64,000 nucleotides of DNA from Auanema rhodensis (Eukaryota > Animalia > Nematoda): the NCBI GenBank assembly GCA_964057225.1, contig OZ059898.1, positions 12,586,001 through 12,650,000 on the forward strand, in the 5' to 3' direction. The position numbers were made by a program, and so were the translations under genes. Positions 483 to 58,500 of this stretch are shown piece by piece (the first letter of the stretch is position 1; every line of letters starts with the position of its first letter). The notes below the pieces were generated by a model, which was given only the letters and a program-made list of their open reading frames with translations, ran no database searches and was not told where the DNA came from.

Positions 483-572
483 TGCAACCGTTCAGATATT
501 CTTCAAAATACGAAATAAGATGTCAATAGGATTGGCGCGAAGTTCACGTCACTTTCACGTAAAATTGACGTG
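483..572 (+). other. Dispersed YAACCG...RCGY element, best copy
   Basis: TGCAACCG at 483. GCGC/ACGT/ACGT/ACGT at 535, 546, 557 and 568 (exact 11-bp period). Confidence 0.65.
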
Positions 573-591
573 CTGTTACATTTAATATAAA

Positions 592-2554
592 TCAATTGTA
601 AAATGATGTATGAGTAGGAAATGGATGATTTTCGAAATTAGGTGCAGGCTTTGGTTTTTCAAAGTTCAAAGTATTTTGAGGAGGTGATGACTCATTTCGT
701 GCTCGTTTATGTTGAACATCTGCAAAAAATAAAATTGGAAAATACATAAAAGATTTCAAAAAATAAATATATATGTATGTAATATAGTTAATAATATATT
801 CTAAATATATTTTAAAAGAAACTGAAAGTAAATCTTACTTTCTGGTAGCATTCCAATATCCAGACATCGTTTTAATCGACAAGCTCGGCATATCTTACGA
901 TAGCCTGTACCTAAGAATAAATAAAGCATAAATCTTTATAATTATATAATAAAAAATAATAAAATATCTTTTTCTTGCGTTCAATTTTTTTTTCTGAAAA
1001 TTCAACAGAATCATGTAGTTATAGAGGGAAGTTTAAAGAAAATATAGGTTGATATATCCTATATAAGGTTGTGACTAATCAACAAGTCAAAATAAATAAG
1101 TTGAGTGCAAAACGATTGAATACGAACCGTCTTTGCTGGCATTGTTGCAGCGCTGGTTCCGTTTGCAAGAATATTGTTTATCGTCGCTTACAGTTCGTCG
1201 GAAAAATGCGGCACATGCTGCACATGTTCTTGCTCCAAAATGAAGCCCATTCGCTTGAGTTGCTTGACAAACCTAGAATTAAGAGAAGAATACATGCATA
1301 AGTATGTATCTTATAGTTGACATTAACTATTATAACTTCTTAATTTAACTAATATACTATAGTAAGTTTTTTGAAAATTATTAAAACCTGGCAATGTAAT
1401 GGAATTCGAAGCCCGGAACTACCAACGCCATTTTTGTTTGGCACAGTGTTCGTCTTCATGTTAGTTTCAACCTGAAAATTACATATTCGAATGTTCTATA
1501 AACTCTATTTGTATCTGAGAGTCTTTATATTTATACAATATACAAATAATATATAATAATAATACAAAATATTATTTGGAGTACTGTACCTTGATAGGAT
1601 TGTTAACTGAGGGGGCGGAGTCAAGGGTTGCCATTGGATAATGAAATACTGGATTAATGTGATTAATCAATAAGTTATCCGCATGAACACTTGAAAATAA
1701 TAAATTTATTTAAGATAAGTTATAAAAAAGGAGAAAAACCTTTGATTATTATACATTGCAGCATCATGTTCCATATCTTTATAAACTAAATTCTGATTAA
1801 CTAAGTTTTCATCCAAAGGTAGTGGCTCGAAATGATAATCAATATCAGATATTCCAAAGTCTAAATAAGAAATTAATAAGATTTTCTACTTGTCTTTCTG
1901 AAAATATTATAAGATTTCAAATAATTACATGAAGAGAATGGAATATTTGATAGTATGTTTGGCTGAGGTGGTAAAGCACTTGTCTCCGGAAGCGCAAACG
2001 ATGGCGTGGACTGCAGCATGCCATCTCGAAACGGTAAACCAGAGATATCAGGTCTTAATAAATTGCCTAAAAGAATAACTTGAAAAGTGTATGTTAAGCT
2101 GGATATGCTGGATATGCTGGATATACCATTTTCAATTCTCTTTTTTTTTCTTATTTATCCATATTTTTGCTTTGAATATTTGACGTTGTGCACAGTCATA
2201 TCTAATATGATATTGGAACAAAAATGGCAAAAAATAATTTCAAAAATACTTCATCTCAAATGGATTTTATATTTTTCTCCTATTTTGCTCGGCAGATTGT
2301 AGTTTTGATTTGAAAGACAGAAAAAACTCGAAAACAATTTCTGTTAAACCGAAAAACCTACCTTGCGATGCGGGATGATGTACTTGAGAAGTTAAGTGAG
2401 AACCAACATGAAATGGAAAATTGAAATCTACATGACTTATTGGCGCATTTGTTAGACTGTTAGTAGGAACTTGAGATTCAGGTATAGATATGGATGTAGT
2501 CGGCTGTATAGAAGGCCTTTCTTGGCTGTAACTTGGCACCCAAATCTCTTCCAT
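592..2554 (-). CDS. odr-7: ODR-7-type nuclear receptor (C-terminal DNA-binding domain, no LBD), ~8 exons
   Basis: Spliced exons give CQVCQATQANGLHFGARTCAACAAFFRRTVSDDKQYSCKRNQRCNNASKDGTGYRKICRACRLKRCLDIGMLPENVQ near the C-terminus, after a long low-complexity N-terminus. Stop TGA at 594-592. Confidence 0.9.
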
Positions 2555-4263: not shown

Positions 4264-5295
4264 ATGCATATATATTCCACATATAGCCTTCTTATTATGC
4301 TGATGGTTTTCATTCAACTAAGCGGTATGTTTAGGTATTTATTGATTCTTTTTATTTTATTTTTTTTTCTATTTTCTTTCAAAAACACACACACATGCAC
4401 ACATATATACACATATACACAAGATATACACAGACACACTACTTTTTTTCGTGTTTTCTCAAAGCCTTTTCAATTCAGACACCGAAAAAGCCCAATCAAT
4501 GCCTTGTTGTCTGGAATCATTGGGGATAACAGCTTGTTCCAAACTTCGAACACATAAACCTTTATGGTTTAAACACAGGTTCCTTCTTAATGCTTCTTTG
4601 GTTTCAAATTTTTTTCACTCAAGCATTTTTCAAATAAACGAACCTAAAATCTGCTCTCTCATATGGCTATTTACTCGAACAGCTTGTCCAATTTGACAAT
4701 TCTTCGAACTATTTGCCATCTAATTCACTGTGATTGACATATTAAAAGTTCAAAGCTAGAGAAAAAAGCTAGGATATATCTTTAAAATGTGAAGAAACAC
4801 TAGAAAGAAAACATAAAGATAATCTTTGTCGCTTATGATATCTTATTCAAAATCTATATTTTATGTGTGAGACGGTAGCCGATTTTGCGTTAGTACAATG
4901 CTGCCATTCGTGTGGTACGGATGTTCAAGTAAGTTGTACTCTCTCTTATCTCCAAGAATCTGTGCTTGGCAGTTATCACTGTTACTTCTCAATAATATTC
5001 ATTCAAGGCGTTTGGACAGAAAATATTTTCCAATGGAGATCGTAGTCCTCAATGTTTTGATCGACATAACAAGAAATATTGTGACAACTTCGTAGATCAA
5101 GTCTGTTCCAATGAATATCCCTGTATAATTCTATAAATGTTTTAGAGAGATTCATGGACTAAAGATGGACAGATGACCTGCTCAGGGAATGGAGCATCAT
5201 TAGCTTTTCGTATTTGTCGAAAAACATGTGGATATTGCAATGAAACCTTATATCAGTTGAGCTTGTATGATGCAAATTGTCCAGTTATTGGATAA
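4264..5295 (+). CDS. Small secreted cysteine-rich protein with C-terminal ShK-like motif
   Basis: TTTCAG 2 nt before the ATG. Signal peptide MHIYSTYSLLIMLMVFIQLS. Exons give PCCLESLGITAC...RCETVADFALVQCCHSC...CFDRHNKKYC...AFRICRKTCGYC...CPVIG*. One acceptor (~4864) is non-canonical (see findings). Confidence 0.75.
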
Positions 5296-8200
5296 TAGAA
5301 GAATAGAAATGATGATAAAAGTGAAGTGTACATAATGTATATATAATAATTATTATTATATTTATATAATTATATTAATTTATATTGTTTTTGTTTTTGT
5401 TTTTTGTTTTCATCATACATTTGTGTCATATCATAACATTTATTTCAACAAATCTTTTAACACATTCATCATAATAACTTATTTTCTTGTAACATCGCTA
5501 CATTTCTATAAAAGTTTGCACGATTGCTCTGTGAAGTCTTTTGATGTTTTCAACAGATTTTTCATTTTTAATTTCATATTGATTTATAATGTTTCCTCGT
5601 ACTTAACTTAAGCTTTTCTTAAGCTTATACAACAAAGGATGTACGAGTTCAAACCTTTGTAAAGCTAATTATATAGAATATATTGTATTAATAAAAATAA
5701 TAAAACAAAATAAAATTTTAGAATTATAGTAAATAAATCAATATTTGTATAGATTATAGAGTACAAATAATATCCAACAACTTACTTCTTTTTTTTCTTT
5801 TTTTCTAAAAAATAAAATTTTTTCTAATATTTGAATTCAAATAAATGCATATTTTTGAATCTCTGCAAATGATTTTCACGTACATTTCACGCAAATCTCA
5901 TTTAGCTCATCGTCTTTTTCATTTTGATTAGTACTAACCAGATGATCGGTTGCCTTTTTTTTCAAATTCAGACATTGCTTTTCCCGCAAATCTATTATTT
6001 ATTATATGAAATAAACTATATTGACTCTTTATTATATAATATTTTTTTAATTTCGTAATCATAGAAGAAGCACTATTCACTTACATTCAGTATATATATA
6101 TTATATTAAACATATGGAAGTAATTATAATATATTATATATAATGCTTAATAGAAAAAAAGGAAACGAATGTATATGCTATAGTTTAACTATATGTTTTT
6201 GACTTGAAGATTGAAGTTCGAATCTCATCTACTCTTACATCTTCCTGTAATGCACATTCGCATCTTTTTACTAATTTTCCAACTTTTCCGCTTATATCAT
6301 CATATGGTAATGACGTTTTTGTTTCTTCTATTCATCTTGTCTTACTCTTCTCTGTCTGTTCATCTTGGTCTAGCTCTCAACTTTGTCAGCTTTTTCTTTG
6401 CATTTCTCATTTTTATCTATGAGATATGAAGCATATTCTTCCATTCTGATACTATTGAGTACTCTCCACAAACTAAATTTACATAAAATGCCACAAATAC
6501 ACATAAGCATATACATATTTTGCCCATCCAAATATGGAGAAAAGAATGACAACGTGTAATTCGGAGCAGCTACAGATACTTCATCAATCATTTTCACTTT
6601 TCAAACTACTTTTGCTTTTCGATATCCGTCTTCTATGTGTTTATATCAGGTATCACTTTGTTTTTTGTTCTTTACTTCTTTAGAATCTCATTTGCTTGAA
6701 GTTTTTTTCTCAATTTCTAACGTCTTTGGACTAAGTGCTGTCGAAACTATGAAGATCCATCTCGTCAAAAATTCTGAAGGGTTCTATCTTACTCAAAAGC
6801 TTGGATTGTTGTTTGGTTGAAAAAGTCAACGATTAACTCAACCAAACACAAAACGGGCTCATAAACTCCTTGTGACTATGTCTAATTCAAATTTCCGTTC
6901 ATCGCGAATGCTTTGCTTTTCCATCTTTATCTGACTGTTCATATCAATGAAGCTTGGGAAATTTTACAGATCACAGGGCTTCCTTAGTCATCAGATGTTG
7001 TTTCTCTCTCTCTCCATCCTTTTCTCCCCCTCTCTCTCTTTCTCTTTCCCTCTTTCTCTCTTTCACTCTGACTATTTTATCACTATTTAGTTCTCTCATT
7101 TGCGTATCATCTGGTTTTCTCCAGATAGTTTTTGGTGTACTCTTGAGAGTTGCTTCAATGTCTTCTATATCAGCATCTCTTCTTTCTTTTCTCTTGTTCT
7201 TCAACTTTCCTCTGATGCTTCTTCGTTGGAGCTATGGTCCCAGCAGGCTAGACTTCGTCAAATCCTTTATCCCACCCTCGCTGCTTCTGCTTTCGAATGA
7301 TACATATGAGATTCGACAAAGAAAACAAGACAAAAACGCCTTGCTTTTCTTCACAAGAAGAGCTTCTTTACCCTCTTTGCATTCTTTTTCTTCGCCTCTC
7401 TCTCTTTATGATAAGCTCTTTAGCTCTTTTCCTCTCTTTCTTTCTCCCTTTCTTCACTGTTCCCTATATCCCTCTCTCCTCTTGCTTGATCATGTTCCAG
7501 CTGCCGCTTATAAGCAATTTCCAGAAACGCAAAGCGTCCATATATATATGAACATACGAAAAAGGGAAGAGAAGCAGAGATAAATATAAAAAGAAAAAGG
7601 AAGAGAGGGAAAAATAGAAGGGATTGGGAAAGAGAGAGGAAGACAGCTTCAAAGAAAATGCTATGTGAATCCACAGGGTTTCCCTTCATAAAGCGTTCTG
7701 CGAGCGCCTTCTTACAAACTGATTTTTCCACTCGGACTTTTTCTACTACTTCTCCTACTTGTTTATCATCTTACGTTACCTACCCATATTTGTGTCTGTG
7801 ACAAGGATGCGTCAAGCATAGCATGCCATCTACGTTCCACTCACTACCATCGATTCCATTTGATTTCAATACTTAAAGCATTATATGAAAAAAAAATTCC
7901 CAACATATATTCACTTCATTCTATCTTTTTGAAATTTCCGAAAACGTTTCTGCTGATTCAGCTGCAGCTTCTGCTTGGTGCTGTTGCTGCTCCCGGTGAC
8001 AGCAGCCAGCCAGAGAAGCGAATTACTTATACTGCGTACTTCCATTCGAGCTCTCGCGCCTTTTATGGAATTCAATTTTCGCGTACTTCGTGATTAGATT
8101 TTCCTCACTCTTGTACTCCGTTTTCCTCTTACTTCCAACTTTACCCTTTATGTCATCTGGTTTTTTTTATTTTTTTAGCCATTATTTGGTAATTTTTTAC

Positions 8201-8321
8201 ATCTAATTCACAACAATTTATTAAACTAATTGACTGCCATAGTAGCCAGTTTATATTCATTTTCTAGTTGATTCTTATAGTTGTAATAGGTTCACACACA
8301 CGCACACACATGCGTGTATCC

Positions 8322-9070: not shown

Positions 9071-9947
9071 CTATATAATATTAAACTTTAGTATATATAT
9101 ATAACTATTTCTATGATGAGCTGTATACATCTTTAAAGAGAGTCAGACATACATTTGTACATATCTATACTCTTGCCACTTTCACTATTTTCTTGTTTTT
9201 CTCTCCTAATATATCTTACTCTCTCTCTCTCTTTTTCTCTCTCACACGCTTCTTTTTTTGAAAGTCAAATACCTTACTTCACACTTGTTTTTTTTTTGTT
9301 TCTCTATAAAGTATGTCCTACCATTTTTCATTGCTTATTACTTGGTAAAGTCATTGAATTTTTCTCCGGAAGTTTTTTTTGTCCAAAAAACAAAGAAAGA
9401 GTAAGCAGAAATAAGAGAATCAGAATATCTTCTCTCAATTCCCGGAAGAGAGCAAAATGCAGACAGCAGCTGATGGAGCAGAGATGGCTTGAATCCGAAG
9501 TGCTGAAGCCTGTTAGCTAGCTGGCAAGTTCTGGAAAGTAGTCATAACTTTATTTTTAAGGAATTCTCAAACATATTTCACTCAATTTACGTATCTACTC
9601 CTGCTCTGTCCCTTTTCCCGGGTTTTGTATGTCCACCAAATCTTTGTTAATATGCATAAATGATGTCATATGACCGCAAAAGCATCAAAAACTTTTCTGT
9701 TATAGCTAGAATTATGTTGAAAAGGTTTAGCATTGCTACGTTCACCTACATACATCATGCAAATTTGACGCGTCTCTCACGTGAACTGCTGGCTGTTATT
9801 TGTCATTTTTGAACTTCAAGTTCATGTAAACGGTTGCATTTTTCTCTTATTCTCTCGCCTACTCTACCTCAATCATTTTTCTATTCCTCTTTTGCTAATT
9901 CTGTCATGAATCTCATTCGTCTTTGCCTTCTTTCTACTAGCACTCTC

Positions 9948-15254: not shown

Positions 15255-18200
15255 ATGCGACTTCGACCGTCGCCTACACAACGTTCTCAGACTGAATCCC
15301 CATCCAAGCACTTTATCTATCGACCACATCCACGCATATTTAAGGTAAAAACAGTATATTATTCTGTATGTATCAATATCTTGTAGGCTTCACTTGTGGT
15401 ATTCGTTTTCTCGCTGCTCGCGTGTGCGGCAGCGAGTGGACTGTCGTCAAGTCAGCAGCCCTGCTCGTTTAGGTCCGAAATACAACAACATGTGGTACGC
15501 TTTTTTCGTTTTTCTTTTTTTTTCAGCTCCTCAACCTAATATTCCAATCTATCCTATTCCATACTGAAGAAGATTTAGCCTTCTTTATATACTGAATACA
15601 GTGCTTCCATACGATAATTCACAATTCATTTCAGTCGAAAAGGCTCAACTCTTCAAAATCATCAACATCGATGGAGCAATGTGTCATCTGGAGTGAGGAC
15701 AGCCCCCGAGAATTATGCTTGGTGGAGCCAAATCAGCGAGTTCGCAAACTCAGATCCACTTTCCTCTTTTCTCAAGTTCAGCCTCTATCTCTATATGAGG
15801 TTAGTGACGAACATCGATTTTCCATTCTCTGGTATTTCCAAAATCTTCAAATTGATATTTGAAATGTTGCCAAATTAGTGTTCTTCCTTTTAGTCGAAGA
15901 AGAAGTGGGGTGGGTGGGTGGTTGGTGGAAGAAAAAATTCAATAAGATTGTAGAAGAAACGAAAAAAAAACAGATATATTGCACACAACCGTTCGTTTTC
16001 GTTAGTAGAATTCAAATGAATGAAAAAAGGCAATTTGATTTTTTCACGTCTTTTCACCTAAAACTTGGCTATTTTTCGGAGAAGAAAAAAAGACCATTTA
16101 TTCGTAAGAAGCAGACATGTAAAGAAGGGGTGGGGGGAACGTTTGAGGGACGGGGTGGGGTGTAGCAGCAGAATTTGGTGAGACAGAATGAAGAGCGGAA
16201 AGTCGAAAGAGTTTTAAGCTCAGGTTTCAAACTTCTATTAAGAAAATGCAAAAGGAGATAACTACAATGTCATCTGAAACCCTGTTTCTGGCAAGCTCCA
16301 GTAGCTTGTCCTTATTTGTAATTATGCTGTCATGGAAGTCAAATTACACAGATATACATATGTGTATAGATTAAAAAATATGCATTATCGTTCATTTTAT
16401 TCATAAATTGTTGAGAACATTGATGTAATTTAATTCTTAGTAATGACTTTGGTATATCATATTAAAGTTTAGGATTGTATTTATTTGGTGGAGAAAAGAG
16501 CTCAAGGTGACTATTTCCAGTGGAAAAGCTTCCTTGCTCCTTATCCTTTAACCACTTTACTAATCTTTTCACACATTTATTTATTAGAAATTACCCAGAA
16601 TGCAAAGTAAAGAGAACATGGGAGAATATGAAAATCAGTAAAATTTCGGAAAAAGATATTGAATGAATTTGAAAATTCAGAGAATTTCCTGAGATTGAAA
16701 CAAAATTCTTTCGTTGTATTATTTCATTTTCATATTAGCATGATGCACAATATTTGGGGATTAAAAAAAGAAAACAACTACCAGAGTATTGTCTATTGTG
16801 ACAATTAAGCTTCAACAAACCCTAATGTACCTTTTTTCAGGTTCTTGCTGCTGGTTCGAGAGACGATCGGATACAGAGTGGCTTGCGTATGGGAGAGGAT
16901 GGACTGGACTGCGTCACCGGACGCGACACAACATGCTTACGATGCTACCAGCGTCTGGCAAATGGCTTACGTCGTCTGGACGAGGCTTATCGATCGTTCG
17001 ATCAGGCTCTTCAACGATTTGACTGTATGCCGGCTGTTGATACTGCCAGTGCCACCAGACCATTCTCACCGAACGGCTCATGTAACACATGTCGAGTAAG
17101 TTCATCTTAGCTTACATATTGTTGTTTGTTTCCCGAAATTCATTCACGTTTCGTAAAATTCTAAATATTCAAATATTTCTAAAATGCCTATAACCAAATG
17201 CCATAAGACACTCAGATGTTTCACCAAAACTTGTCACTTATGTGAGGGAAAAATTGAAGAAAGTAGCAGTAACGCAGTTCGTCTTATCCCTTCCTTATAC
17301 ATGAAAGAAAATAGTGAAGATGCTGCTTTCAGCCTGCCAGATCTGAGTCAGTCTTCAGTTCCACACATCGACCAGAAAAGAATGAGTTGCGTAGGCGAAA
17401 GTAAGAAAGCGAGAGTATGGAGCGGTACAGCAAAAGAGATAACCAGATAAAGGCAGAGAATTGAGAGAAAAGTAGTGTCTGAGCATACAGCAGCATCTAG
17501 TGGCTACTTCTCCATCCAATATACCTAGAAATAAGCTGGTTGAGTGTTGTTTAAGGACTACTCCTCTCACGAAAGCTGAAAAGAAATGAATCAAATGATC
17601 TTATTTGTTAAAAGTATAGAGAACAAAAGGGAATTGAAACATTTTCTTTCTCTTTACAATTCACCAACTAGTATTGTTTGAAGAGTAAACTGAGAAAATG
17701 ACCTGTCTGCATTCCATTTAATAAATTTTCTTGCCAGAATTTTCGAGCAATGAGTCATTGTCACGGAAATTCCCTCTTCCTTTGCTTAGGATCATTTTGT
17801 CTCTAAACTATTTCCGCCTTTCACTTTTCAATTAAAACGAATGAAATTGAAGAATTAACAACGAGTTATGAACTTTCAATCTACTCTTGCACAAACATCA
17901 GGGTCACAATACATAAATGTACATATGTGAACTTATAAAAATAATTCATATAATACTAAATAGGGCGAAGTCTGGGGCTTAGTCTTTCATTTACATATTC
18001 TATGCTATTAGTTTTAGAATTTAGTTTTCTTTTACTTCAACTTTTTGTGTTCCAGTCATGGTATCGACGATGGCTACTTGTTCAAACGATCAACATGTGG
18101 CGATCACCACCATGTGTCAATTGGTGCTACTATGCTCAGCTGGCTTGTCCACATTTGGCCACCTCCAAAGTTGTCGACTACGCCGGTCATCCATCGTTCC

Positions 18201-18891
18201 AATGTCGAGGTAAGACTTTTCTATGAATTTTTAAGTTTATCGGCTTTTTTGACCTGAATGCCATAAATTATGAAAAGCCCTAAAGCTGGGAACAACCGCT
18301 CATCGCATTTACATATCATACAATTTAGTTTTACAAATTCACGAGAAATTTTCACACGGCATCATTTCATTCGAATAATATATATTAAGCTATAGCTAAC
18401 CATAAGTTATTTTTTCTATTTCAGACCTCGAAATTCCTTCTCGAGAGCATTCGGAATCACGTTGTGAATGCGTGCATCCCTGCGATCTCCGAGGAATGGT
18501 ACCCAGCGCGGATGAGGAGGGCGCGGGCGGGCGCCGGTCCGGGCGCCGTTCGGCGAAGGACCACGAATTCGGTCTACACGACTTCTACGCCTCGCAGTCT
18601 CACTGTCGAGCACGCGATCGCGAATGCGGCCGGATAAGAACAACGGCCGATCGAACGACAGCACATGATAGGCGACAGCAGCGGCTCAAGACGTCGGCCA
18701 GCGGCGTAACTTCGTCCGCGGCGTCCAGTACATCGTCCACGTGGTCATCATTGCCAATGTTCAGGTCTGTCGTGTCGTCCGTAGGACGTCACGGGAGTAT
18801 TTGGCCATTTGGCTCTGTTGTCCGGCTGCCAGCTGCCGGTCTTCTTGCTGCCTTTTGTTGTTTTCTTATCAATGCTGTGATATACGTTTGA
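15255..18891 (+). CDS. nlf-1: NALCN/NCA channel auxiliary factor (NLF-1/FAM155/Mid1-like)
   Basis: Exons 15255-15344, 15387-15494, 15635-15799, 16841-17095, 18056-18209 and 18425-18891 are in phase. Hydrophobic N-segment. Cys-rich domain CNTCRSWYRRWLL...PPCVNWCYYAQLACPHL...YAGHPSFQC matches the FAM155/Mid1 pattern. Ser-rich then hydrophobic C-tail. The start codon is uncertain. Confidence 0.85.
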
Positions 18892-25223: not shown

Positions 25224-25868
25224 AGTACAATTGGTTAAATATTATAATATTCAAAAACAAATAAAAAAAATAAACAAAGATGATAAAGTTGCTCTCTTTG
25301 TAATTACCTAGAAAAGAAAAGTAATATAAATTAATCAAGTTCTTGGAAGGACTCTTTTTTACAACCTTTAAATAAAAACAATTACCGTAAGATAAATTTT
25401 AGAAGTTACCGTAACCGAAGAAGAGATTAAGTAAGAGTAAACAAAAATTTTGAAAACTTAGGCAAAAAATAGAGAAATAAAGATAGTTTTGGAATAAAAA
25501 AGCATTAGAAAACATAGTATAAGATATGTTAGACTATTAAAACAATGCTTAGACAGGATTTGATAATCATATAATGTGCCCAGATCCTATTATCCAAGTG
25601 TAATTTGAGCCTACTATAACTACTACTTATTCATAGTTTATGAACTACTTGTGAACAATGTCATTTGATTATAGAACAATAGAAGAGAGTTTATGGGAAA
25701 GTGGTTAAGAAACTGATGTTAGGTAATATACCCACATTTGATAGCTTACATATGTATATGAACAACCGATTACTGCCCAGAAATGAATAGCAAATTATTT
25801 GAAATTTGAGGTTTGTACGTGAAAACGTGAAAATCAAATATGATCAACCAGTTCATTTTTAAAACAAA

Positions 25869-32672: not shown

Positions 32673-34781
32673 TTAAGTTTTAGATGTTGTTGTTGAATTT
32701 TCACAAAATATTAAAATATCCTGAAAAAAAATGAATGAAACTTTTCTCTCTTGAAAAAGTGATATGAGGAAAATATTATTTCAAAAAACTGACACTAACG
32801 CTCTTCGGGTCTCCGGACAACATCAAGATATCTTCCTTAAATTCTGCTGCTATGGATCGGATTGTGGCTATCCGTAACAGAAGTTGAGTAAATAGGCCAG
32901 AATCTCTAGGACATTTTGACAAACAATGATCCAACAGGCAATTATAAACTTTTTCTCGTCTTTCTTCTATTTCTTCGTGAAGTTTAATATAGGGTGCTTC
33001 TGCAAATTCAAGGTTTATCTATATTGCTTAGTTGATAGATCTGATGAATCGCACCGTTGTCAAGCAGAAATATCAATTTTATTCCTCCCATCATCATTTT
33101 ATCGATAGGTAACTCTCCTAACTTATCTACCAATTGATATAATCTTCTGAAATAGGCAATGTTTCATTTTATTAGTTTCAAATTATATTAGATTCTACCG
33201 ATAAAATAGTGGATAAGATGCATTGAGTGTATGCTCATCAGAATCAAGATATAAATCTAGAGCTAAATCGCAGATTATCAGTTCACAGTAAGCTGTAAAT
33301 GTTTCGTTCTTTGTAATGGTTGGCCGTTTTGCTGTTAGCTATACCGTTGAAGATAAGACTGGACTGATCAGACGGCGGAAGTTGTTGAAACGCCGGAATT
33401 TGAAAAGCAAAATCCAAAAGTCGTTTCCGATAATAATTTTTCAAATATATCTCTCTCTCTTCACTTTTCACATCATCATTCGTATTTGTTGCTTCCTTCG
33501 TACTTATACTCTAAAATTGAATGATTGTTATTGTAATAACTACAGTAAAACTTAATTATTACTGTAATGGATTACTTGAGACGGAATAAACTCAGAAATG
33601 ATATTACACTTTTCTTATTCATTGCTCCAATATGCAAAAAAATGAAATACTTACTATATTTAAATTGCTGTTGTCAGAGGTGGAAGCTCGAATATCGCCT
33701 GCTTGTAGAGAAGTTGATGATGTTGTTGCTGAAGACATGGGTACATTGATGACCTCGGCTACCATTATTGGGGTTAGGTGTCGTTCTTCTTGAACTGCTA
33801 AAAGTCTAGTTGAAGTTTTAGTATCATTAGCTGTTTAAATATACGTTTACCTTCCTTTCTCATTCCCATCAGCATACATTTTTCGAAACGACAAGCTTGG
33901 CATCGATTCCGATGTCGTTTATCGATTAAACATTTACTGAAAATGGATCTTCACTGTCATCTTCTATAATTTAGCTTTAAAAGCTAGCAAAAAGCAAATA
34001 TTTGTCATTTCTTTATGGAACAGAGGATATCTCATATACTGAATTAAGCATGGATGCTTACCCATTTTCTTTACATTGATATTGCATGTCCTTTCGAACA
34101 GTTCGCTTGAAAAACCCTTTACAGCCTTCACAACTAAAAAGTCAGAAAAATCGAATAACAAAATAAGAAGATATCAATACAAAATATTTTTTTCACGAAG
34201 AAAAGCAAAACAATCGTACCTGTAAACTCCGTAATGTTTACCACTAGCTTTATCAGAGCAGATTGAACAAGAATGTCTTGACAATCGTCTCCAACTGAAA
34301 AATCAAACTTAGTTTTTGATCATCATTATTTAAAAGAAATTTTGTTTCTACTACAAACAAATTGTTTAAACTAAATTTACGTAAAAGTCCACGTATATTT
34401 AACATAATACGATTTTATTTTAAATATTAAGTATGCAACGAACGGTTGTAGAAAAAGAAAGTTTCGGCAAAAAAATCGAACCTCTTAGACGATGCTTCAG
34501 TTCTCCTACCCATCGATAGGCTCGTGGTCTGAAATACATAAGAACTTGATTTCATTTAAGAACTTTCTCAAATGTACTCCGATGGCCTGATATGGCGATG
34601 CCAGGCACTTGGAAGAAGAAAAAAATGAGGAGGCCGTACTTTCAATTACAATATTTTACTAAATTGTACATTTCGAGTTGTATTCAAAATATTCATATAC
34701 TTGTCACTTTCACCTTTCCAGTGGTAACACTCGATTAACGGAATTTTTAAATGAATACGGATAAGGAAGAATAGTTCCCGT
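32673..34781 (-). CDS. RXR/USP (NR2B)-type nuclear receptor with divergent, shortened LBD; 5' end uncertain
   Basis: [81 protein letters not shown] pieces [31 protein letters not shown] and [11 protein letters not shown]. Confidence 0.85.
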
Positions 34782-39578: not shown

Positions 39579-40957
39579 ATGAACTATGCGGATCCTTGGA
39601 GAGAGTTTCTATCACTTCTCTCAGAAAATAAAAAGGGATTTTTTAAAAAACCTGATTATGATAGGATCCTCTCGAGAATGACAGTTCTTAGTAAAGTAAT
39701 AGAGTGAGATTGATATATTAGGAAGTATATCATTTCACCACATTTCTTAAAGGGATGATGGAATTTTTGAGAATGCTGCAACTGTGCATGCGGAAATGGC
39801 GTCGATTTACAAGACTTTGGAAAAGCATACGCAACGAGAACAACATTTAATAGATGCTGCCAATTTATTAATTAAACACATGGAGAGGAAAAGACGGGTC
39901 CTAAGCAAATGTAGTTTTTTAACAATCAATGAAATAAACATATAATAAATATAGTTGAAAGTCCTTTCAAGCATGACGCTTTTGAATTTTACAATGCGGC
40001 AGTGAAATCAGCTGACGAAAATGGGTGTAAAGCAATGGCAGGTCAGGTTATTTAGAATTAAAAGTAATATGAAATCATTTTAGGCATTTACGCCCTAGGA
40101 GGAGCCAATCGCATGAAAGATGTTGAATCGTTTGTTTTAGCAGATAGACTATATCGTAGAGGTTTTGCAAATTTTATTCGATTAGTGATATTGGAATTTC
40201 AGCATATTATTACCATGAAGGCAATTATCCTATGCAAGTGACAATCCTCTGGAATATGGCAGAGATTTCAGTTGCTCAAAAATCGCTAAACAGAACTCTG
40301 AATGTAATGGATAAGATATGGATGCTTATTCTAAAATCTCGAACAGAGTAAAATATTATTGTTTGTTCTTCGTAATTCCGTTGCCTTCAGAACAAAGACG
40401 GCTTTGCCATACCTTCAACAATGTGAAATGATAACGGTTCTTCTGCTAACACGATTACGAAAAGTAAGTTTATAATTCCAAATGTTTTTATTTGAAATTT
40501 AAATTTTTGTGTTTTTTTTACAGCGAATCTAACCGATTTATCAAAACTTTAGTGAAAATGAAGACGTGTGAAATTTCACGTTGGATTATGACTGCATTGA
40601 AACTTTTATGAAAACTTGATGACTTTATTTTTTTCAGAGAATCATTTTAACGGGCAGACATAAATCAATATTAGAACTATATTCAGTTAAATTTTTTGAC
40701 GCTGATTCTAAGGTACTGAACATTTTTAGGTACTTCTAGATATATTGCCTTTTTAGGTTACTAAAGAGGCTGAGAAAGAGAAAACTACATTAGAAGATGT
40801 TGTGTTTAAATATTTTTCTGTATTAATTCATTTATATGCAAGTTCCGAATTATCCGAAGCAGCCGAGAAGTTGAACTCTCGAGATTATTCTTTTATATCT
40901 GGAATAGTGAGGAATGTTTGCGTTATTTTATTAGAGAAAGATTTGATAATCGACTAA
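39579..40957 (+). CDS. HAP40 / F8A-like helical protein (putative huntingtin partner)
   Basis: KKGFFKKPDY...ENAATVHAEMA...HLIDAANLL...FYNAAVKSADENG...LYRRAA lines up by eye with HAP40 KRFLRKPNV...YAA...A..A...LTEAARLF...FQRAA. Confidence 0.6.
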
Positions 40958-45116: not shown

Positions 45117-48051
45117 TTACAATTTCGATTTTGCATCTTTCATCATAGGCCCCAAATACTTGTGATATGATGGTAACACCTGAATAAATAAAATTAAGAA
45201 ATTTTTAAGAAATTAAAATACATCAGTTTTATTTAAAGGGCTTTGTTGGACCCATTCTAGTAGAGCAGGATATACATTACCATCACGTCTACCAAGAACC
45301 TAAAACAAAGAACATGAAAACATTTGAAATATTCTCTAAAAACTAACAGATTTCAACTCTCTGTCATCAATATCCCAACTATCTACTAGAGCAACAGCAT
45401 TTGGGCGAATAAGTTCCAAACAGTGATAAATGCCGGTTCGGATATTGTTGATCTGATTTTCATTCATGTAGCCAAACTGAAGGAAATAAATTGTGAAAAG
45501 TATAAGTTGTTTCAAACCTTCAAGAATTCTCCTTCAGAATGACCGATCAAATCAAATGCATATAGCTTAGCCAAGTAGGTGAGAGGCTCTCTTATTTTAA
45601 GATCTGTAGCTTTGGCTACTTTATTCAAGAAATTTTTTACAAGATAAAGTCGTACATGCCACTGAAACATTTGTGAAAATTTTAAATGTAAAAAATGGCA
45701 GTTTATACCCTGGATGCTTTACTTAGCTCAACTGACACTAAATTCCAGGACTCTTCGACAGTGTTGTTTTTTTGAGATGCTCGATATAAATCATATGCAC
45801 GGAACACCTAAAACATAAAAAAATTAACCAAAGGAATAATAATGCAAAAATGCAACCGTTCACAACGTTAAAGTTTTGGAAATTAATTTCACGTCGCTCA
45901 TAAAAAGAAAAAACTAGTTACAAGACATTATACTAATTTATTTTGAATATATTCACCTGATTTCTGGCTACATGTTCGAAATCTTCGATAATTTGCTCAT
46001 TACTGTAGGTCTTCCAATTAGTGAATGCTGAACGTGAACGTCCAGATCGTCCTAAATATGCACAGATATCGGCTAACCGAGCTTTTCCATTGCGCACTTC
46101 TTCTGCTGCTTTTATTAAGAAGCGAGCAACTTGTTGTAGCATAACTAAGTTTTCTCCTTCGTATGTGCAACCTCCAACAGCATAAGAATATATTTCGGGA
46201 AAAGCAGAAGCTTGGGAATAGCCATGTCCTCCACATGCAAGTCTACATTGCTCTATTCCCTAGAAAGATAAGTTTTAGAAATGAAAACAGATCTCATCAA
46301 ATGTACACTTGTACGGAACAATAATATCACCTTTTACAACCTTTCGAAATAAAAAAAACATTTTATCAATTAAGCCTTATTTTTGTTATCAATTTACTAG
46401 TTATACTTTAAATTCTGCTCACCTGAGCAGTTTCCCAAGAAACTACAGACTTTAATCCAGAAGACAGTGCATGAATTTCCGGGAGAAGATCAACATTACC
46501 TTCAATCAGTTGCTCAGTGAGCTGAAAAGTAAATCAATTTTCAGGAATATTTTAAAACGTTTCTAATTCATTCATACCTTCATGTAAAGGTCTCTAATTT
46601 CATATGCTGCGAATATGAATGCGAAAGCACGAGCAAGTTGTGGAAAAATGCGGTATTGTTGTGTTTGATAATCAATAATTTGTACTTCACCATTTCTAAA
46701 ATACACAAAAATGTGCTGAAAAAGTTTTTACCAAGTTTTTTACCCAGCCACTTTTTCTCCTTGCCGACGAATAGCACTATAACGTGTAGCAATGCAAGCA
46801 GCAGCAGCCAATTGGTGTGATTGGTCCTTAATCATAATAGATCGTACAAACACCATTGTTCCAAAAGCAAGCTTGGAATGTTTTGGAGCAACGTATGTAC
46901 CATCGGGAAGAACCTATATAGATATACAATAGATTATTTAACTTTTTGTTTGTTTTGAAGACCTTAGAATATCTCATCATCATATTTTCTCTTGGAACAC
47001 GATAATGGTCAAAAATAAGGAACCCATTATCACTGCCATTAATACCTAACTTGGGACCTATGTCACCAAGTTTAACTCCTAAACAATTCATTTAATTTTC
47101 ACTTAAGATCAAAAATAAAACCTTTCATAGGCATATGCGTTTGTTCATCTCTGAGTTGTACAATAAAGGGATGTGGTCCCATATTTTTTCCTTGAGTGTA
47201 TAGTTGAGCTACTACAATAGCATGGTTAGATGATTTTCCAAGGGCACCAGGCCACCATCTAAAGCATTCTAAGTAAACGGAAATACTCAGGTTAAAATGC
47301 ACTTGGTGGCCGTAATTGTTGGAGTATGAAGAATAAATTCTTGAGTTTTAGGATCATACGTAGCTGTTGTTTCTAATTTTGCCAAGTTAGTTCCATGCCC
47401 CAGCTCTGTTTGAGCATAAGTTCCGACGACTCCTCTTACAATAGCCAGAGTCAACCACTTGTCTAGTTGATCATCATCGGTTTGACCTTGTAGGGTGGGA
47501 ATAAACATTACATAATGTAAAGACATTGCATGCAAATCTCTTCCCATAACCAAACTAAAAAGAAAATCCATTTTAACTCTAACTTTTAAACAATCTAAGT
47601 GTTACCTTTGGAGGTACATTCCTTCACCAAAGAAATCTGATCCATCAATTGCATCTGTGTTATCAGTCATTGCAACAATCTTAAGAGAAAATTACTAATA
47701 CAGTTTGTATAGTGCTATAAATTATTTATCTATGTGTGAAATATTTACAAAATTCCAGTAGGATTCATAAGAAAAATTCACCTTTCTTGTTCCATTTTCA
47801 CATCTCTGCTCCCTGGTCATGAATTCAACAGGGATTGGGTCATCAAATTCTTTAAGTGACTTAACAAACTCCAAAATTTCTTTTCTTCTCTGTGAACAGC
47901 CATGCTTTCACCAAAAATATATAAAATGAAATACCACTAAAACTTCTTCACCGCCATGGATGAAAGCTGCCATTCGGTCAACATCGAAAGTTGCACTTAG
48001 TCGCTCTTTTGTGATATCGGGATTATCTCCCGGCTGGATCAGGTTCTTCAT
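45117..48051 (-). CDS. Peroxisomal acyl-CoA oxidase (acox-1 family, most like acox-1.6)
   Basis: [65 protein letters not shown] and PTS1 SKL*. Confidence 0.95.
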
Positions 48052-48568: not shown

Positions 48569-50588
48569 TTAATGACTTCTTAAAAACTTATTGTAAACTG
48601 CTAGATATGTGTTTGCTGTTTTTTTTGCGAAAACGACATCGCTAGGATGTAAAAAATCTTGAAGAGCTATTGGCTCCCGTTCAACATCATCATCTTGATC
48701 CGGAACTTCAGTGTTGCCTGATTTTTTGGACGAATCGTTATCACGAACTCTCTGACCCTCATAGAAATTTCGACTCAATTTTCGCAAAAATTCATGACTG
48801 AAATCATTAGATATGGAACTAATATGACCCAGAAATAAAAAACGTACCGACTTTTGATGCTGCTCAGGGAACACCGAAGTATAAAGGGATTTTCAGAAAT
48901 CACTTTATTGGATAGTTGCATAACCCGATATATATAATAATAATTGTTTAATATATACTTAGCGTCTGAAAGCAAAAAGTAAATTTGAACATTTATCATG
49001 TTAAGTGAAGCATGGCTACGTGAAATTCACGTAAAATATTTATTTCAAAATCGCGCATATTCACAAACCGGTTGTATGAGCTTATGTAAGTTTTTAAATA
49101 TTATTGAGTTCTTACCCATCATGAAGAGACGGGGATCCATCAGTAGCATTTGTTTTATTTCTGCTGGTGAGAATAATAGCTCTTTATTGAACATATTAAC
49201 CAATCTCTGAAAAAACGTTTCAGATTATCCGGTAATCAATGATAAATTTTACCTGCAATGGGCCCAATCCAAACATCACAATTCTGGCTTCCTTGACAAT
49301 CAATTTTCTCACATCATTGCCAGAAAGGCCAAACTGTTTTTGAATCCATCCTAATCGAGCATCCATAGTTTTAACATCAACATTTAACCAATACCTAAAA
49401 ACTTACTCGATTACATTAAAAACATTAAATTCTACCTAAATTCTTTAACGATTTTAACTATTTCAGCTTTAGTAAACCGTTTGGATTCCAAATAGTTGTA
49501 TCTAGCCTTAAATATCCTGTTATTGAACTCTAACAATTCAACACTAACCTTCATATCATCAAGATTTTGTATCAAGAAAAAAGGATTTCGCGTAATATAT
49601 TCTCCTAAATCACTCGGCTCAAATCCTACAGAAACCAACCATTGAAGCTAAAAGGATGAGAAATTATTTCAATTGAATATGGAGCATACCTTTGGCTTAA
49701 CATCCTTATCTTTATCAAGGCGGATAAGATGTCTTGATAACTGGGTAGTGGTATCAATCTGGAAACTGAGAAATGTGCTGACTTCAATGAGAAAAGCATA
49801 CTTCAAATAAGTTTACACCTAAATCGACTAGAGTTTGTAAAAGTGGTACATGATTAACATAAGGGGCAATCGTTCTGGAATAGACAGGAGGAACGCTGTC
49901 ATCAGGATTGAAAGGGTGTGGATTATCGCTGTAAAACTTTGAAAGTACATAAAATAAATCTAGCTAAACTAACCGAGAAGGTGGTTTACTCAGATCAGAA
50001 TTATCAAGTTCACCTTCTGTATACGAAATAGACCGGAATTTAACTTTTCCCGTTTTCTTTTTCAATTCAATCTCATCCTCCGTCATTTTTGGGACCCTAT
50101 CAGGAAGACTCTCATCGTAATGAGTTGTAAGTTCGGAAAGCATTTCCACAAGCTCTTGGGCTCTATTATCCCAATCACGTTCTTCATCTTCAACGCATTG
50201 TTGAAATTCTTCATCTGATAACTTGTATGGTCCAGAACGAACTACATCTTCCTAAATATGGAACCAAATCAGTAATAACAAAACTATATTTAACCGTATT
50301 CATGGTATACGTTTTGTTTTTCCATTTTCGTATTCGTCTTTTAGTGTTAAGAAGCTCTACGTTACTATTCTCTGGTATTCTTTTAGTATTTCGTTTCTTC
50401 GGGGTAGTCTCTAAATCGCACGTTTTCTGAAGATTCAAACTCTTTAAATTTCGATATACACAGCTTACATCTCCGTCATCTAACCCGAATGAATCAGATT
50501 CGCATTTGCTAGTAGAAGGCATATCTGAGGCACACATCCGAGAAAATAATTTTGCTGGCACATTTCGAAGAATGCAATAACGTAACAT
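48569..50588 (-). CDS. mTERF-family mitochondrial protein (mTERF3-like)
   Basis: Mitochondrial-leader-like N-terminus; IAPYVNHVPLLQTLVDLGVNL, RNPFFL, DARLGWIQKQFGLS and RYVFLRKLSR. Confidence 0.8.
49017..49076 (-). other. Dispersed YAACCG...RCGY element in 150-nt mTERF intron
   Basis: Minus strand reads TACAACCG, TTGAAAT ~26 nt later, then the palindrome TACGTGAAWTTCACGTA. Confidence 0.65.
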
Positions 50589-51243: not shown

Positions 51244-51440
51244 TTTATAAAATTTCTACAATCAAAGCAGATTAACATATGCCAAATAAGTGATTCAAGT
51301 GTCATAGATATGAAATGCGATATGAAACGCAAATAAATTAAAACATTATGTACAGAAAATGTTCAACAAGATCATGAAAACATTGGACAATATTAACAAC
51401 CAATTGAGTATCGTGTAAAGACAAAACAAAAACAAATTAA

Positions 51441-53397
<1,957 letters not shown>

Positions 53398-54247: not shown

Positions 54248-55525
54248 AACACTAACTGCATTAATATTGGGAGTAACAATGCTTTCAAGTTTATGAAAAT
54301 TGTGAGTGCAGGTCTTACTGTGATAGTATTTATTTTATGATAACTTATCACATTGTAGCATACTTTTTGCGTTTTTATGTATTTTGACTGGTTTCTTTAA
54401 GATTTGGCTAGACTAGAAACGTCTGAAACTTAACCGAATTTTTCGATTTTGTTGTCTATCATTCAAATTCCATGAATGTAATTAAATATTTATATTATAT
54501 CACTTTGATTTTCGGAAAATAATATACATGAATTTTTCTTCTTAAGCTTTAACAGATATTTATTCTCAAACAAGGTTTGTTAAATCAATAGCTTCTTCGG
54601 GGATAAGTTTTTTATTAGATGCGACGTAAGGCACTTGTGTGTAAAAACTTATTAGTATGAGTGACCTGCTTCTCTTATCGACCATAATATCTCTTATTAT
54701 GCGATATCTATTCTATAAGATAAAGTGCACTGCAAGGTTAAATATTGGTATAATCGGAATCGTTTAATATATGATCATAATATAACTGAGATGTTTTTTT
54801 AATGAAATAACAATGTATATAATTTAATCATTTTCATTCAAGAAAACTATTTATAAAGCTAGTTCAACTTTTATATGTTTTTAATTTTAAAGTTATCGGT
54901 TATCATTAGTATGCTAATGAATGGAATCGAGGGAGAATTGATTCATTTATTCAAATTTAATGTTTTATTATTCTTTGCGGTTAGATTAATATTTTTTTAA
55001 ATAAACTTTGATAATATTTCGGATATATCCAGGTAGTAGTAGTAAAATTTAAAATTGTTGATAAGGACCGTCAAAAAATCACGAATTTAAGTAAGAATGT
55101 CATTCATGACTACAATATGTCATTTGATTCAATCACCAAGCTTAATATTTTCAAGCAACGTATATAAACAGATCACTAGATCTTGAAGATATTTGAAAGA
55201 TAAGAAATATGCTTTAAAAAATTGAGATATTACATTAAATTCATATGTTATAAACAAAATTTATTTTTAATTGAAAAAATACCGTATCCCATAGATCACG
55301 AACAATTCAGTATTATATTCATAACACATAAAAAGGCAGAACGGGATTGAATTGCGCTCTAATCATAACGCGGTAACCTTAAATTTCAAAATATAATTAT
55401 GTAATTTGCTGTAAAACTGAATAAAACTTTGAAAAAGCTGTAAAATCTTGTTTGGTTTTGAAATTTTGATCATGTTTACTTTATATATCTCTGTTTCAGG
55501 TGTGTTGTATATATAAGTTTAAAAA

Positions 55526-58500
55526 ATGGATGATTTGATTGATTTTCTCTCAGCCCAGTTTCATTCAGTTGATCAATTTTCCAATGATTGGGTCTCGAAC
55601 ATGTATGAAATTATGATATTACTTTGATATGATTTTTTTGAATTCTAGAATTGATGGTAATTTTACTGAATTCGATACTATATCCGGAGTTGTGAAACCA
55701 GAGTTTTTTGAAATTGATGTGTCAACACAAGTAGAACTATGCAAAAAATGTATTTCGCTTTTGAGTTAAAAAAAAACATATTCAACATATGTGTTTAGTA
55801 TCAAAGCTGTTATACAATTTTCAAAAAAATTCCACTATGGAGGATAAAATTTGGGAAAAAATGACAGAAAGAGGAATTTCTGGTAAGAAACTCATGCTCT
55901 TATTCTGGTATTCTATTGAAACTGCAATTTCGAAGAACAGGTATTCTTTGTTTTTTTTAGTAGTTTTTCTTTTTTTTCTTTTTAGCACGGGATTGGATAT
56001 AAAGTCAGGAATAGCTGCCGCATCTTGTTATCACTATCTTTGTTGTATAAAAGGTGCTCAAGCTTATCATATATTCAATCCAGTTCTGTTTGAGGTAAAG
56101 TCTATTCTTCTAGCTATGCACTATTTTGCTATTCTAGAAATGTTTGGAACTTTTCCGTATTATTTTTCGCTGTATAAAATTTGAAGCACGTGGTGCTAAT
56201 ACTAAATCAAAACCAAAAGGAAAAGGAAAATCCAAGAAAAAAGAGGAAACTGTAGAAGATGGTAAGTTGTGAAGATGTTCATGGTGAAATCATAGTGTTT
56301 TTTATAGAACAAGATATGGGTGTCGCTTTAGAAAAAAGCGAATTGGTGGAGCTTTTAGAAGAAGCTACTTCAGCGTTGTATGTGTTATTGAACAATGGTA
56401 ATCGTGATCAAAATATTTTTATTGTTTCTGTTTCAAGTTGCTTTATCGGCGTTTAAAGAAGCCAGTGAGGCTACTGCTCTATTTATAAGAGATATAGCTA
56501 CAATTGATGCCACAAAAGATACATGCGTTGATGCTTCCGAAAGTATGAGGGATTTCAGCAGATTACCTTATATGTCTGATAGATCTTTTGCCTTAATGCA
56601 TAGACTTGTAGAAGAAAAGCATAGTAACGAAGGAGGTCTTTTGGTAAAGTTAATAATTTATATTTGATTTTTATGAATAAGTTAAGGTGTACTCGCGTAT
56701 TGTTTTTCCTCGATTGGCATATTGGGGCTTTGACTTGTCTACTGTTGCATCGTCTTCGAGTATTCCAGCTTCGTACACCATGTGGAAAGATTTGATGATA
56801 CGTTTCATTATTTCGAGAATTAGAGTTGGGCTCAAATCAGAAATATCAACAATTGTTAAGGTTAGTTAATGGTACAAATAAATAGCGCGTATGTATTCAT
56901 GATAAGAATTAATTATAAGACGTGCAACCGAAAATGCAGCGTTCTTCAAATATACGGTAGAAGTAATATACGTAGCTGTCCTCCGGGCTGTTCACTTTTT
57001 AGCTTTTATATATTAATTAAAATAAGAACTTTATAGATTCTTGAAAATTTATTTTGTCGATGTACGGATCGCCAGGATTACAGAAGCAAGCTATCGGCTA
57101 CGGTAGTTCAAATTCTGTTGGAATTACCTAGAAAGGAGCAATATGTTAGTATTTTACAGAAATTGACTCTTCAATCCCTTTTTTAGGACTTTCTTTGTAG
57201 ATTAAACGTTTTTTCTCGCAATCCCAAAACATCTCTCAGAAATTTTACAGTTGAAGTCGTGCCTCAAATCTTAAAATCGATAAGTTAGTCGTAGTAATGC
57301 TATGTATCCTAATTTTTTCTCCAATTTCAGATCTTGAAGAGGTAAATAATGCTTCTACAGAAGAGGCTATCGATGAAACAGTTGACGAAACTAGAGTTGA
57401 TGAAGTGAGGTTTTTCTAAACATCCGCATATTATATTTTTATTCAGACTAGCAGTGCAAATGAAAACAATACTAACGATGAAGACAGCGACGATGAAATA
57501 GAAAAACTTAGAAGAAAGCGGGCAAAGGAAGCTGCAAAGAAAAAGAAACTAAAGTACTGAGTTTTCTGTCATTATCAATGTTTAATTTTTGTTTCAGACG
57601 ACCTGTTTTAGAAAAAGTCGATGCTAAAACCGTATTGTATGACTGCCTTGTACGATGTTGTGTGGATAAGTCTTCCGGTGTTCGTGGAAAGGGGATAATT
57701 CAAGTAGCACAATTGCTCACTGACCCTATTCACGGAGAAAAATTAAAATCTATTGCTCAGAAAATGGTAAGATATTATTCAATTTATTTTTTTGTTTAAA
57801 ATGTAGCTTTAGTATGAGGAAACTCCGCAATTGTTTACTGGCAAGCTTTCAGAGGAAGGTGAAGTCGAGGAGCAGGAGGGTATAGATGAAGATGTCCTGG
57901 ATGATTCTTTGATTGAAATTACCAATGTTCTTTTCTATATTATCACATCTGCTATGAAGGATGAAAAGGTCATAATTCGGCTAAAAATTAAACTGTTTTA
58001 ATATATTGGTGTTTAGGCTGTAGTTCGAAAATCTGGTATAATCGCTATGCAATCTTATTTTAGAATGATAGATAATCGAAACGAATTCGACGAAGCACTG
58101 ACATTGTTAAAAGTTAGTTCTAAACAGGAACGACTAATATTCTTGTCCATTTCAGAAATCTGTTGTTGATGCTTCTGTGCTGGTTCGTAAACAAGGTGCA
58201 GAGACAATTAATCAGATTCTATCAAATGATACTCTTTTTAAGTATGTATAGGTTATTAATATCTGATTTATAATCATACTTCTCAGAGATCATCTCGAGA
58301 CGATGTGGCTGAAAACTGTTCTTCCGATGATTAATGATCGAGAACAGTCTGTCTCAGATGTCGCTGGTAAACTCATTTCTGAAACAATTGTTCAACCTAT
58401 ACTGAATGATGATGAAACTGTCTGGTCTTTGCTAGGTAAAATCGAGCAAGAAGATAATCATAGGTTCGGAGAATTAATATATATTTTTATAAAGACTCAC

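Follow-up and report, generated by a model that had tools for sequence, protein, structure and literature searches.

A recurrent three-part DNA module in a 64-kb stretch of Auanema rhodensis, a candidate compact initiation cassette for short non-coding RNA

Contig OZ059898.1 of the nematode Auanema rhodensis (assembly GCA_964057225.1) was analyzed over positions 12,586,001 to 12,650,000 of the forward strand, a stretch of 64,000 nt that is called the window here and within which all coordinates are numbered. Its DNA is 29-39% G+C, its introns are of the GT..AG type and mostly 41-56 nt long, and its protein-coding genes, identified by protein family matches, are mutually unrelated. Dispersed within and between these genes is a short module, which an initial annotation had described as a recurring three-box element made of CAACCG, a "YRAAAT" box and "RCGY" tetramers. 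Twelve of the 14 copies then listed proved to be true composites, and with moderate confidence we propose that each is a compact, autonomous RNA polymerase II (Pol II) initiation cassette whose product is a non-coding RNA, either short or unstable.

The statistical footing of the module was established against 300 dinucleotide shuffles. CAACCG occurs 18 times on both strands with 9.4 expected, and two RCGT cores 7-15 nt apart follow it at +30 to +95 in 7 of the 18 cases with 0.03 expected, an excess over shuffled controls that bears out the recurring three-box module. The same pairing on the opposite side of CAACCG was found at none of the 18 sites. None of the other 4096 possible hexamers shows this downstream RCGT-pair property as strongly as CAACCG and, conversely, CAACCG adjoins nearly every ACGT pair of ~11-nt spacing in non-coding DNA. 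The tetramers exist and are often 11 nt apart as claimed, but are more precisely described as ACGTGAA/TTCACGT-type boxes, which occur in either orientation in 8 of 12 copies as against 5% of control segments (P = 2e-8); the distance from proximal to distal ACGT box is mostly 11 nt. The middle box is likewise genuine, and its position is rigid: on the complement of the CAACCG strand, YATT begins precisely 27 nt ahead of the C in CGGTTG at 6 of the 18 sites (0.32 expected, P = 4.5e-7; P = 8e-5 once corrected for 181 offsets), and the remaining offsets average 0.5. A position weight matrix derived from the seven exact-phase copies was over-fitted and recovered only its own training set.

Two of the listed copies, both flagged as weak from the outset, were dismissed, since 22481 has neither an ACGT box nor an in-phase YATT and 37210 lies inside a mitochondrial-carrier coding exon. 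The strong copies are 485, 5952, 9836, 15986, 25763, 28823, 34448, 40530, 45853 and 49074; those at 18293 and 56925 have degenerate boxes. When the 12 copies were aligned with MAFFT, the boxes alone were kept and the spacers shared nothing, and a repeat finder returned no family covering the copies. Neither a repeat common to them nor terminal inverted repeats nor target duplications came to light. The absence of any alignment beyond the boxes rules out a young repeat, as the initial annotation had anticipated, or a miniature inverted-repeat transposable element (MITE), and the copies do not line up end to end as pieces of one transposon would. Boxes kept among free spacers point instead to a multi-box unit, consistent with the suggested multi-protein binding site.

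All sites were then anchored on CGGTTG, the reverse complement of CAACCG, with the A of YATT as +1. Read on this strand, the module consists of a YATT(T) that resembles a start site, CGGTTG at +27 to +32, and, between 8 and 57 nt upstream, up to three ACGT boxes and at least one. Over the 12 copies the start box has Y at -1 in nine, A at +1 in eight, T at +2 in nine and T at +3 in 11, with the full TCATTT in just three, and T-rich runs directly precede it. Seen from the other strand, CAACCG and this middle box (box B) are 23 nt apart where the register is exact, and what is conserved in box B is a set of A/T positions that form TTYATTTT on the strand read here. The spacing from start to CGGTTG is exact in 6-7 of the 12 copies and slips by 1-2 nt in four (25763, 40530, 49074 and 56925), and 18293 keeps the register with AATT replacing YATT. 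CGGTTG is present in 11 of 12 copies (CGGTTA at 40530) as part of a longer downstream box, RAWCGGTTGYAT, spanning +24 to +35. Within it, GGTTG (GGTTA at 40530) occupies +28 to +32 and C or T stands at +33, a match to the consensus RGWYV(T) of the downstream promoter element (DPE).

The upstream half is looser. Proximal ACGT boxes stand at -8 to -33 and distal ones usually 11 nt beyond, so that their distance to the start is variable, and ACGTGAA/TTCACGT are the sole enriched words in this region. Downstream of the start, positions +4 to +26 are unconstrained across copies; G+C peaks at 0.53 at +25 to +30 and falls to 0.19-0.25 at +40 to +45, a profile largely caused by the CGGTTG box itself. 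No orphan ACGT box in the window is paired with a start box and a generic RGWYV downstream element, and CGGTTG sites outside the cassettes are without YATT, which indicates that the parts form one unit. An octamer-type (POU) site is found in only 2 of the 12 copies: in cassette 3 the perfect octamer ATGCAAAT at 9748-9755 shortly precedes the ACGT boxes, and TGCAAAT lies upstream of cassette 2.

RNA evidence was available from four runs of the same organism, in the form of assembled spliced contigs. These contigs place two whole cassettes, 45853 and 49074, within introns of 149-150 nt whose adjacent introns measure 41-56 nt (Table 1). Most other copies look intronic and antisense, mainly by prediction; the hosts of 485, 5952, 9836, 15986, 18293 and 34448 are uncertain because codon bias gives little signal over 0-19 kb and 30-35 kb. 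The claim that all copies are non-coding therefore held for 45853 and 49074, which are spliced out, gained support for 28823, and failed for 37210. Oriented by the proposed direction of firing, the cassettes look antisense to their hosts in a ratio of ~7:1, only three of these placements being based on RNA or homology. Strand independence thus held as far as copies occur on both strands, whereas their orientation relative to host genes is mostly one way. In the orientation first read, a role as mRNA promoter of the host or next gene is excluded by the location of 45853 and 49074 in spliced introns and by copy-free verified gene starts.

Table 1. The 12 cassettes, oriented in the proposed direction of firing, and the identified protein-coding genes of the window (box positions relative to the start)
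Feature	Position	Strand	Boxes	Host or setting	Basis
Cassette 1 (485)	482..575	minus	three ACGT boxes (-55, -44, -33); TATT start ~516; CGGTTG 490-485		
Cassette 2 (5952)	5874..5955	plus	TTTCACGT and TTTCACGC (-43, -32); CATT start 5921; CGGTTG 5947-5952, exact +27		
Cassette 3 (9836)	9764..9839	plus	ACGCGT and TCACGTGA (-37, -26); CATT start 9805; CGGTTG 9831-9836, exact +27		
Cassette 4 (15986)	15983..16062	minus	ACGTGAAA (-32) and AGGTGAAA; CATT start 16017; CGGTTG 15991-15986, exact +27	antisense to plus-strand gene	splice-site prediction only
Cassette 5 (18293), diverged	18290..18365	minus	boxes decayed to CGTGTGAAA and TCGTGAA; AATT at start position; CGGTTG 18298-18293	predicted 215-nt intron 18210-18424 of plus-strand gene, antisense by splice-site and codon-bias prediction	
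Cassette 6 (25763)	25760..25833	minus	a pair of TTTCACGT boxes at 8-nt spacing (-34, -26); start off by 1-2 nt; CGGTTG 25768-25763	intergenic, ~490-570 nt upstream of same-direction gene (ATG near 25222)	
Cassette 7 (28823)	28820..28886	minus	CACGC and ACGTGAGA (-28, -17); TATT start 28854; CGGTTG 28828-28823, exact +27	plus-strand carboxylesterase gene, antisense	family matches on both sides
Cassette 8 (34448)	34375..34451	plus	TTTACGTAAA and CCACGTAT (-38, -26); TATT start 34417; CGGTTG 34443-34448, exact +27	antisense to minus-strand gene	prediction only
Cassette 9 (40530)	40527..40586	minus	ACGTGAAATTTCACACGT inverted boxes (-22, -8); TCATTT start shifted 2 nt; CGGTTA 40535-40530	predicted intron 40464-40637 (GTAAGTTT...TTTTTTCAG) of plus-strand gene, antisense	splice sites and frame continuity
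Cassette 10 (45853)	45850..45898	minus	single ACGTGAAA (-10); TAAT start 45884; CGGTTG 45858-45853, exact +27	149-nt intron 45805-45953 of minus-strand acyl-CoA oxidase gene, sense	spliced RNA contigs, four runs
Cassette 11 (49074)	49014..49077	plus	palindromic ACGTGAA-T-TTCACGT (-24, -13); start shifted 1 nt (~49042); CGGTTG 49069-49074	150-nt intron 48966-49115 of minus-strand mTERF-like gene, antisense	spliced RNA contigs, four runs
Cassette 12 (56925), weaker	56922..56977	minus	one TACGTA box (-17); poor start match; CGGTTG 56930-56925	plus-strand gene region, antisense	splice-site and codon-bias prediction
FAD oxidoreductase	near 22 kb	minus			protein matches
Carboxylesterase gene	27.1-29.4 kb	plus			family matches on either side of copy 28823
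Mitochondrial carrier	near 37 kb	minus			protein matches
Protein kinase and PIG-X-like exon	42-44 kb	plus			protein matches
Acyl-CoA oxidase gene	45.2-48.06 kb	minus			protein matches
mTERF-like gene	48.4-50.3 kb	minus			protein matches
RuvB-like gene	end ~53.3 kb	minus			protein matches

The distribution along the window was compared with uniform placement. Mean spacing of the 12 copies is 5.1 kb with a coefficient of variation of 0.35, which was reached in 3 of 10,000 trials (P = 3e-4), and the smallest gap between copies is 2.3 kb. The even spacing noted initially is thus confirmed within this window as more regular than random. This evenness, measured over 11 intervals of one window, could be explained by gene size together with a rule of at most one cassette per gene.

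Related nematodes were searched for the module. A 16-kb Logan contig (L001) is collinear with window 52.4-45.1 kb at 50-70% protein identity, with RuvB-like, middle, mTERF-like and acyl-CoA oxidase genes in shared order (window 45105-52369 vs L001 57-12012). Both cassette-bearing intron positions are present in it and the introns are long (~230 and 310 nt), but neither contains a cassette and no composite occurs anywhere in the contig. Two further contigs carrying acyl-CoA oxidase (L003 and L004) gave 0-1 matches to a relaxed rule in 41 kb, the lone match falling inside the called acyl-CoA oxidase open reading frame; the same rule gave 11 matches on the window itself. One cassette-like site, which may be chance, was found in GCA_958295435.1 at 8380-8470 (+) of locus L005, ~1.5 kb upstream of an mTERF gene, with an ACGTG box, CATTTTTTT and CGGTTG 1 nt closer. 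An exon-level protein search, an exact look-up of open reading frames and a search of all representatives returned matches from other genera only, at 40-73% identity. As far as could be tested, the element appears to be restricted to its lineage. In the intron of L001 that matches the cassette intron of the mTERF-like gene, a sense TGTTTCA at 5949-5955 resembles the Ruby motif of nematode small-RNA loci, a single case that may be chance. What this analysis contributes is the RNA-based intron placement, the orientation relative to hosts, the offset statistics of the rigid half, a test of how even the spacing is, and the finding that a syntenic relative has no copy.

Of the known layouts, a Pol II core promoter preceded by activator sites agrees best with the largely fixed geometry, the polarity and the letters, and this is our best reading of the module. 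In the proposed mechanism, the ACGT-core sites, of E-box or bZIP type and often one helical turn apart, would bind an activator; transcription would begin at the A of the initiator-like YATT(T) that ends the T-rich stretch; and RAWCGGTTGYAT, with GGTTG at +28 to +32, would work as a downstream promoter element or pause box that defines where transcription begins and probably retains or frees polymerase after ~30 nt. From the layout we infer both the start of transcription at the cassettes and the nature of the RNA. The latter is most likely a short or unstable non-coding product, because no conserved sequence follows, no stable RNA covers the cassettes and the copies are mostly intronic. Rfam searches at gathering thresholds and at E up to 5 returned tRNA-Trp (44814-44885) alone plus chance-level matches away from the copies, so that, with +33 to +110 unenriched and no Rfam match near any copy, a conserved RNA product is not indicated. 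A few copies, such as 25763, may double as promoter of the next gene; the median outron of Caenorhabditis elegans is 369 nt, and the 490-570 nt separating 25763 from the gene below it is within reported lengths (PMC3730108).

The closest known counterpart is the initiator and DPE of flies. There the DPE, RGWYV at +28 to +32, obeys a strict spacing rule and is contacted by TAF6/TAF9 (PMC5580651), and a computational fly consensus, CRWMGCGWKCGGTTS, ends in KCGGTTS (PMC4803293). The cassettes share with this system a start-site-like YATT(T) with A at +1, GGTTG at +28 to +32 in agreement with RGWYV, a gap that is exact in about half of the copies, the lack of a TATA box and activator-type sites at variable distance upstream. 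A high-then-low stability pattern has been tied to polymerase pausing (PMC6436959), and the G+C peak and valley of the cassettes match it. Promoters of C. elegans intronic non-coding RNAs (UM1, which is the proximal sequence element or PSE, UM2 and UM3; PMC2527325) are also short, autonomous, located in introns of coding genes and independent of the host, but they precede recognizable genes for small nuclear RNA, small nucleolar RNA or stem-bulge RNA, whereas the cassettes precede none known. The small-RNA promoter that the initial annotation offered as an alternative comes close to the initiation cassette favored here.

Several observations weigh against an initiation cassette. The downstream box is nearly invariant (11/12), unlike the degenerate fly element; this would be more readily expected of a factor with sequence specificity than of general contacts by TFIID, and the agreement with the fly DPE at +28 could be coincidence. 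The DPE is reported as not enriched in C. elegans (PMC3730108). The cassette start is T-rich and matches TCAKTY in a minority of copies, making it a loose initiator. A 1-2-nt shift in initiator-DPE spacing costs several-fold activity in flies (PMC5580651), and exact spacing is limited here to about half of the copies. Unlike fly core promoters, the cassettes are scattered in introns, often antisense, with none at verified gene 5′ ends; in particular, none lies upstream of the starts of the acyl-CoA oxidase gene (48057) and the RuvB-like gene (~53295). No assembled RNA was seen over cassettes 45853 and 49074, where bin depth equals the share of exon bases in all four runs. Finally, the even spacing is not foreseen by a simple promoter model.

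A related but distinct possibility, which we regard as unlikely, is that the cassettes are this lineage's mini-genes for PIWI-interacting RNA (piRNA) or another class of short capped RNA. In that case a precursor of ~28-32 nt would run from the A, the mature small RNA would begin at the U at +3, CGGTTG with the AT-rich valley would serve as pause or termination signal, and the ACGT boxes would replace the Ruby motif. T at +3 is indeed the best-kept position of the start box (11/12) and agrees with the YRNT rule of 21U-RNAs, and a free +4 to +26 is expected where sequence diversity is the purpose. The G+C peak and valley at ~+30/+40 resemble the pausing signature of nematode piRNA loci, which is strongest in species with piRNA loci in introns of active genes (PMC6436959); whole cassettes lie inside introns, no long RNA was seen among assembled contigs, and one copy per 5 kb would extrapolate to ~10^4 loci per genome, provided that other regions are equally dense. 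Compared with the 21U-RNA loci of the Pristionchus type, the cassettes are alike in the YRNT-like start, T at +3, free stretch of 20-odd nt, stability peak and valley, intronic location and the implied thousands of tiny independent Pol II units. They are unlike them in several ways. The Ruby motif (GTTTC core, ~40 nt upstream) is reportedly conserved across piRNA-bearing clade V nematodes (PMC6436959), but no copy has GTTTC at a fixed upstream position, and the ACGT-type boxes that stand upstream do so at variable distance. Canonical Ruby-motif loci were sought and rejected: the excess of TGTTTCA in the window (34 vs 20) is confounded by TGTTTCAG splice acceptors, and none lies upstream of the copies. 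The regular spacing with no gap below 2.3 kb is unlike that of independent small-RNA loci, the apparent orientation bias of ~7:1 differs from the roughly equal sense and antisense loci of Pristionchus pacificus (PMC6436959), and the discrete conserved box at +27 to +32 is lacking in piRNA loci. The full version, in which ~10^4 independent mini-genes for short capped RNA occur about once per 5 kb in introns of active genes, with the ancestral Ruby/SNAPc promoter replaced by an ACGT activator, a YRNT start and a CGGTTG pause and termination box at +27, appears slightly less probable still.

An alternative of similarly low probability is that the module serves only to dock DNA-binding proteins, for example in an intronic enhancer or silencer, and has no start site. 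The ACGT boxes would then be occupied by one factor, and CAACCG together with the AAAT box two helical turns away by a bipartite or paired factor, an arrangement that takes in the initial idea of a Myb site combined with a cell-cycle genes homology region (CHR). This possibility is kept alive by the near-invariance of CGGTTG, the 1-2-nt slips and the lack of an observed start. A near-invariant CAACCG is what a sequence-specific factor would require, and conservation confined to boxes, partly flexible relative box positions, about one copy per gene-sized interval and the lack of RNA from the cassettes among assembled contigs all fit. The Myb resemblance stood, as CAACCG fits the pattern YAACNG, and several B boxes hold TTCAAA or TTTGAA as in promoters with Myb and CHR (LIN-54) sites. 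The CHR resemblance did not, because the conserved letters of box B are not those of a TTYRAA/TTYGAA hexamer, so that this hexamer is not a conserved core; the copy number and intronic placement are also unfit for a cell-cycle regulon. The exact 23-nt gap and the letters of box B (A, T two positions on, and T-runs before) suit a start site rather than TTYRAA, the G+C profile is polar, and several genes of the window have no copy, with the four genes in 45-53.3 kb sharing two.

An element that spaces the chromosome, the kind of role suggested initially, is improbable. It might be a sequence-specified replication origin, a boundary, or an anchor for loops or for cohesin-condensin, and its promoter look would reflect open chromatin. 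It would account for the more even than random spacing (with its minimum gap of 2.3 kb), for the presence of copies in introns and intergenic DNA whatever the gene, and for genes without a copy. Such roles have no need of a fixed polarity or of a start-site and downstream-element geometry, and the evenness, measured in one window, may have the explanation given above. The roles in holocentromeres, condensin/cohesin loading, sex-chromosome marking or pairing that had been suggested found no support.

Reading the module forward, with CAACCG as a PSE of the small nuclear RNA type and the A-rich box 23 nt downstream as a TATA-like box, is very improbable. Transcription would then start near the ACGT boxes, possibly by Pol III, and yield a small intronic RNA on the host strand. 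Such promoters typically hold their upstream element at a rigid distance from a TATA-like box, and 7 of 8 intragenic copies would be sense to the host, like many C. elegans intronic non-coding RNA genes (PMC2527325). But no known RNA family lies downstream (none in Rfam ~55-60 nt past the putative PSE), nothing is conserved past the ACGT boxes, these boxes would coincide with the start or follow it at differing distances, the A-rich box reads AAAATRAA rather than TATA, and one copy has TTTT, a Pol III terminator, between its two boxes. Decayed remnants of one transposon or MITE family are barely credible, for although a composite of ~35-40 bits would not easily arise de novo at each site with a density of one per 5 kb, which makes a past copying mechanism plausible, and the syntenic relative is without copies, there is no alignment outside the boxes and none of the repeat hallmarks sought above, box spacing differs between copies, and boxes kept while the rest is randomized imply selection on function.

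The surroundings of the cassettes offered further observations. Spliced gene models were searched against proteins exon by exon, never as joined exons. One RNA contig joins the 3′ end of the SL1 leader (CCAAGTTTG) to acceptor 48057 (window 48049-48057, minus strand), which indicates that the acyl-CoA oxidase mRNA is SL1 trans-spliced; the mTERF-like gene ends ~360 nt upstream of this acceptor. A tRNA-Trp (CCA) at 44813-44886 (+) lies where two genes meet with their 3′ ends, one on the plus strand and the acyl-CoA oxidase gene on the minus strand. From 4000 to 16000 the plus strand is markedly pyrimidine-rich, with GC skew to -0.25, AT skew to -0.20 and weak coding signal; long (CT)n and (GA)n runs form inverted pairs at 8322-8362, 9191-9250 and 9925-10034. 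At 14325-14516 a long CAT/ATG trinucleotide array runs across open frames on both strands, encoding poly-Asp on the minus strand, which codon bias prefers, and poly-His/Ser on the plus strand. Three short tandem units of the 12-nt ACGCACAGTTAC lie at 20057-20092 inside a minus-strand gene region. A double E-box, TCACGTGGCACGTGA, is found without a CGGTTG partner at 25078-25093, in putative exon 2 of the minus-strand gene starting near 25222.

Should the initiation cassettes fire, a start and downstream-element design of the fly style would have spread through the introns of this lineage at ~1 per 5 kb. They would then provide a natural system for studying the control of initiation and pausing by a downstream box at +28, the purpose that pervasive intronic antisense initiation serves, and the way in which a composite module can multiply to thousands of copies with no repeat family left behind.

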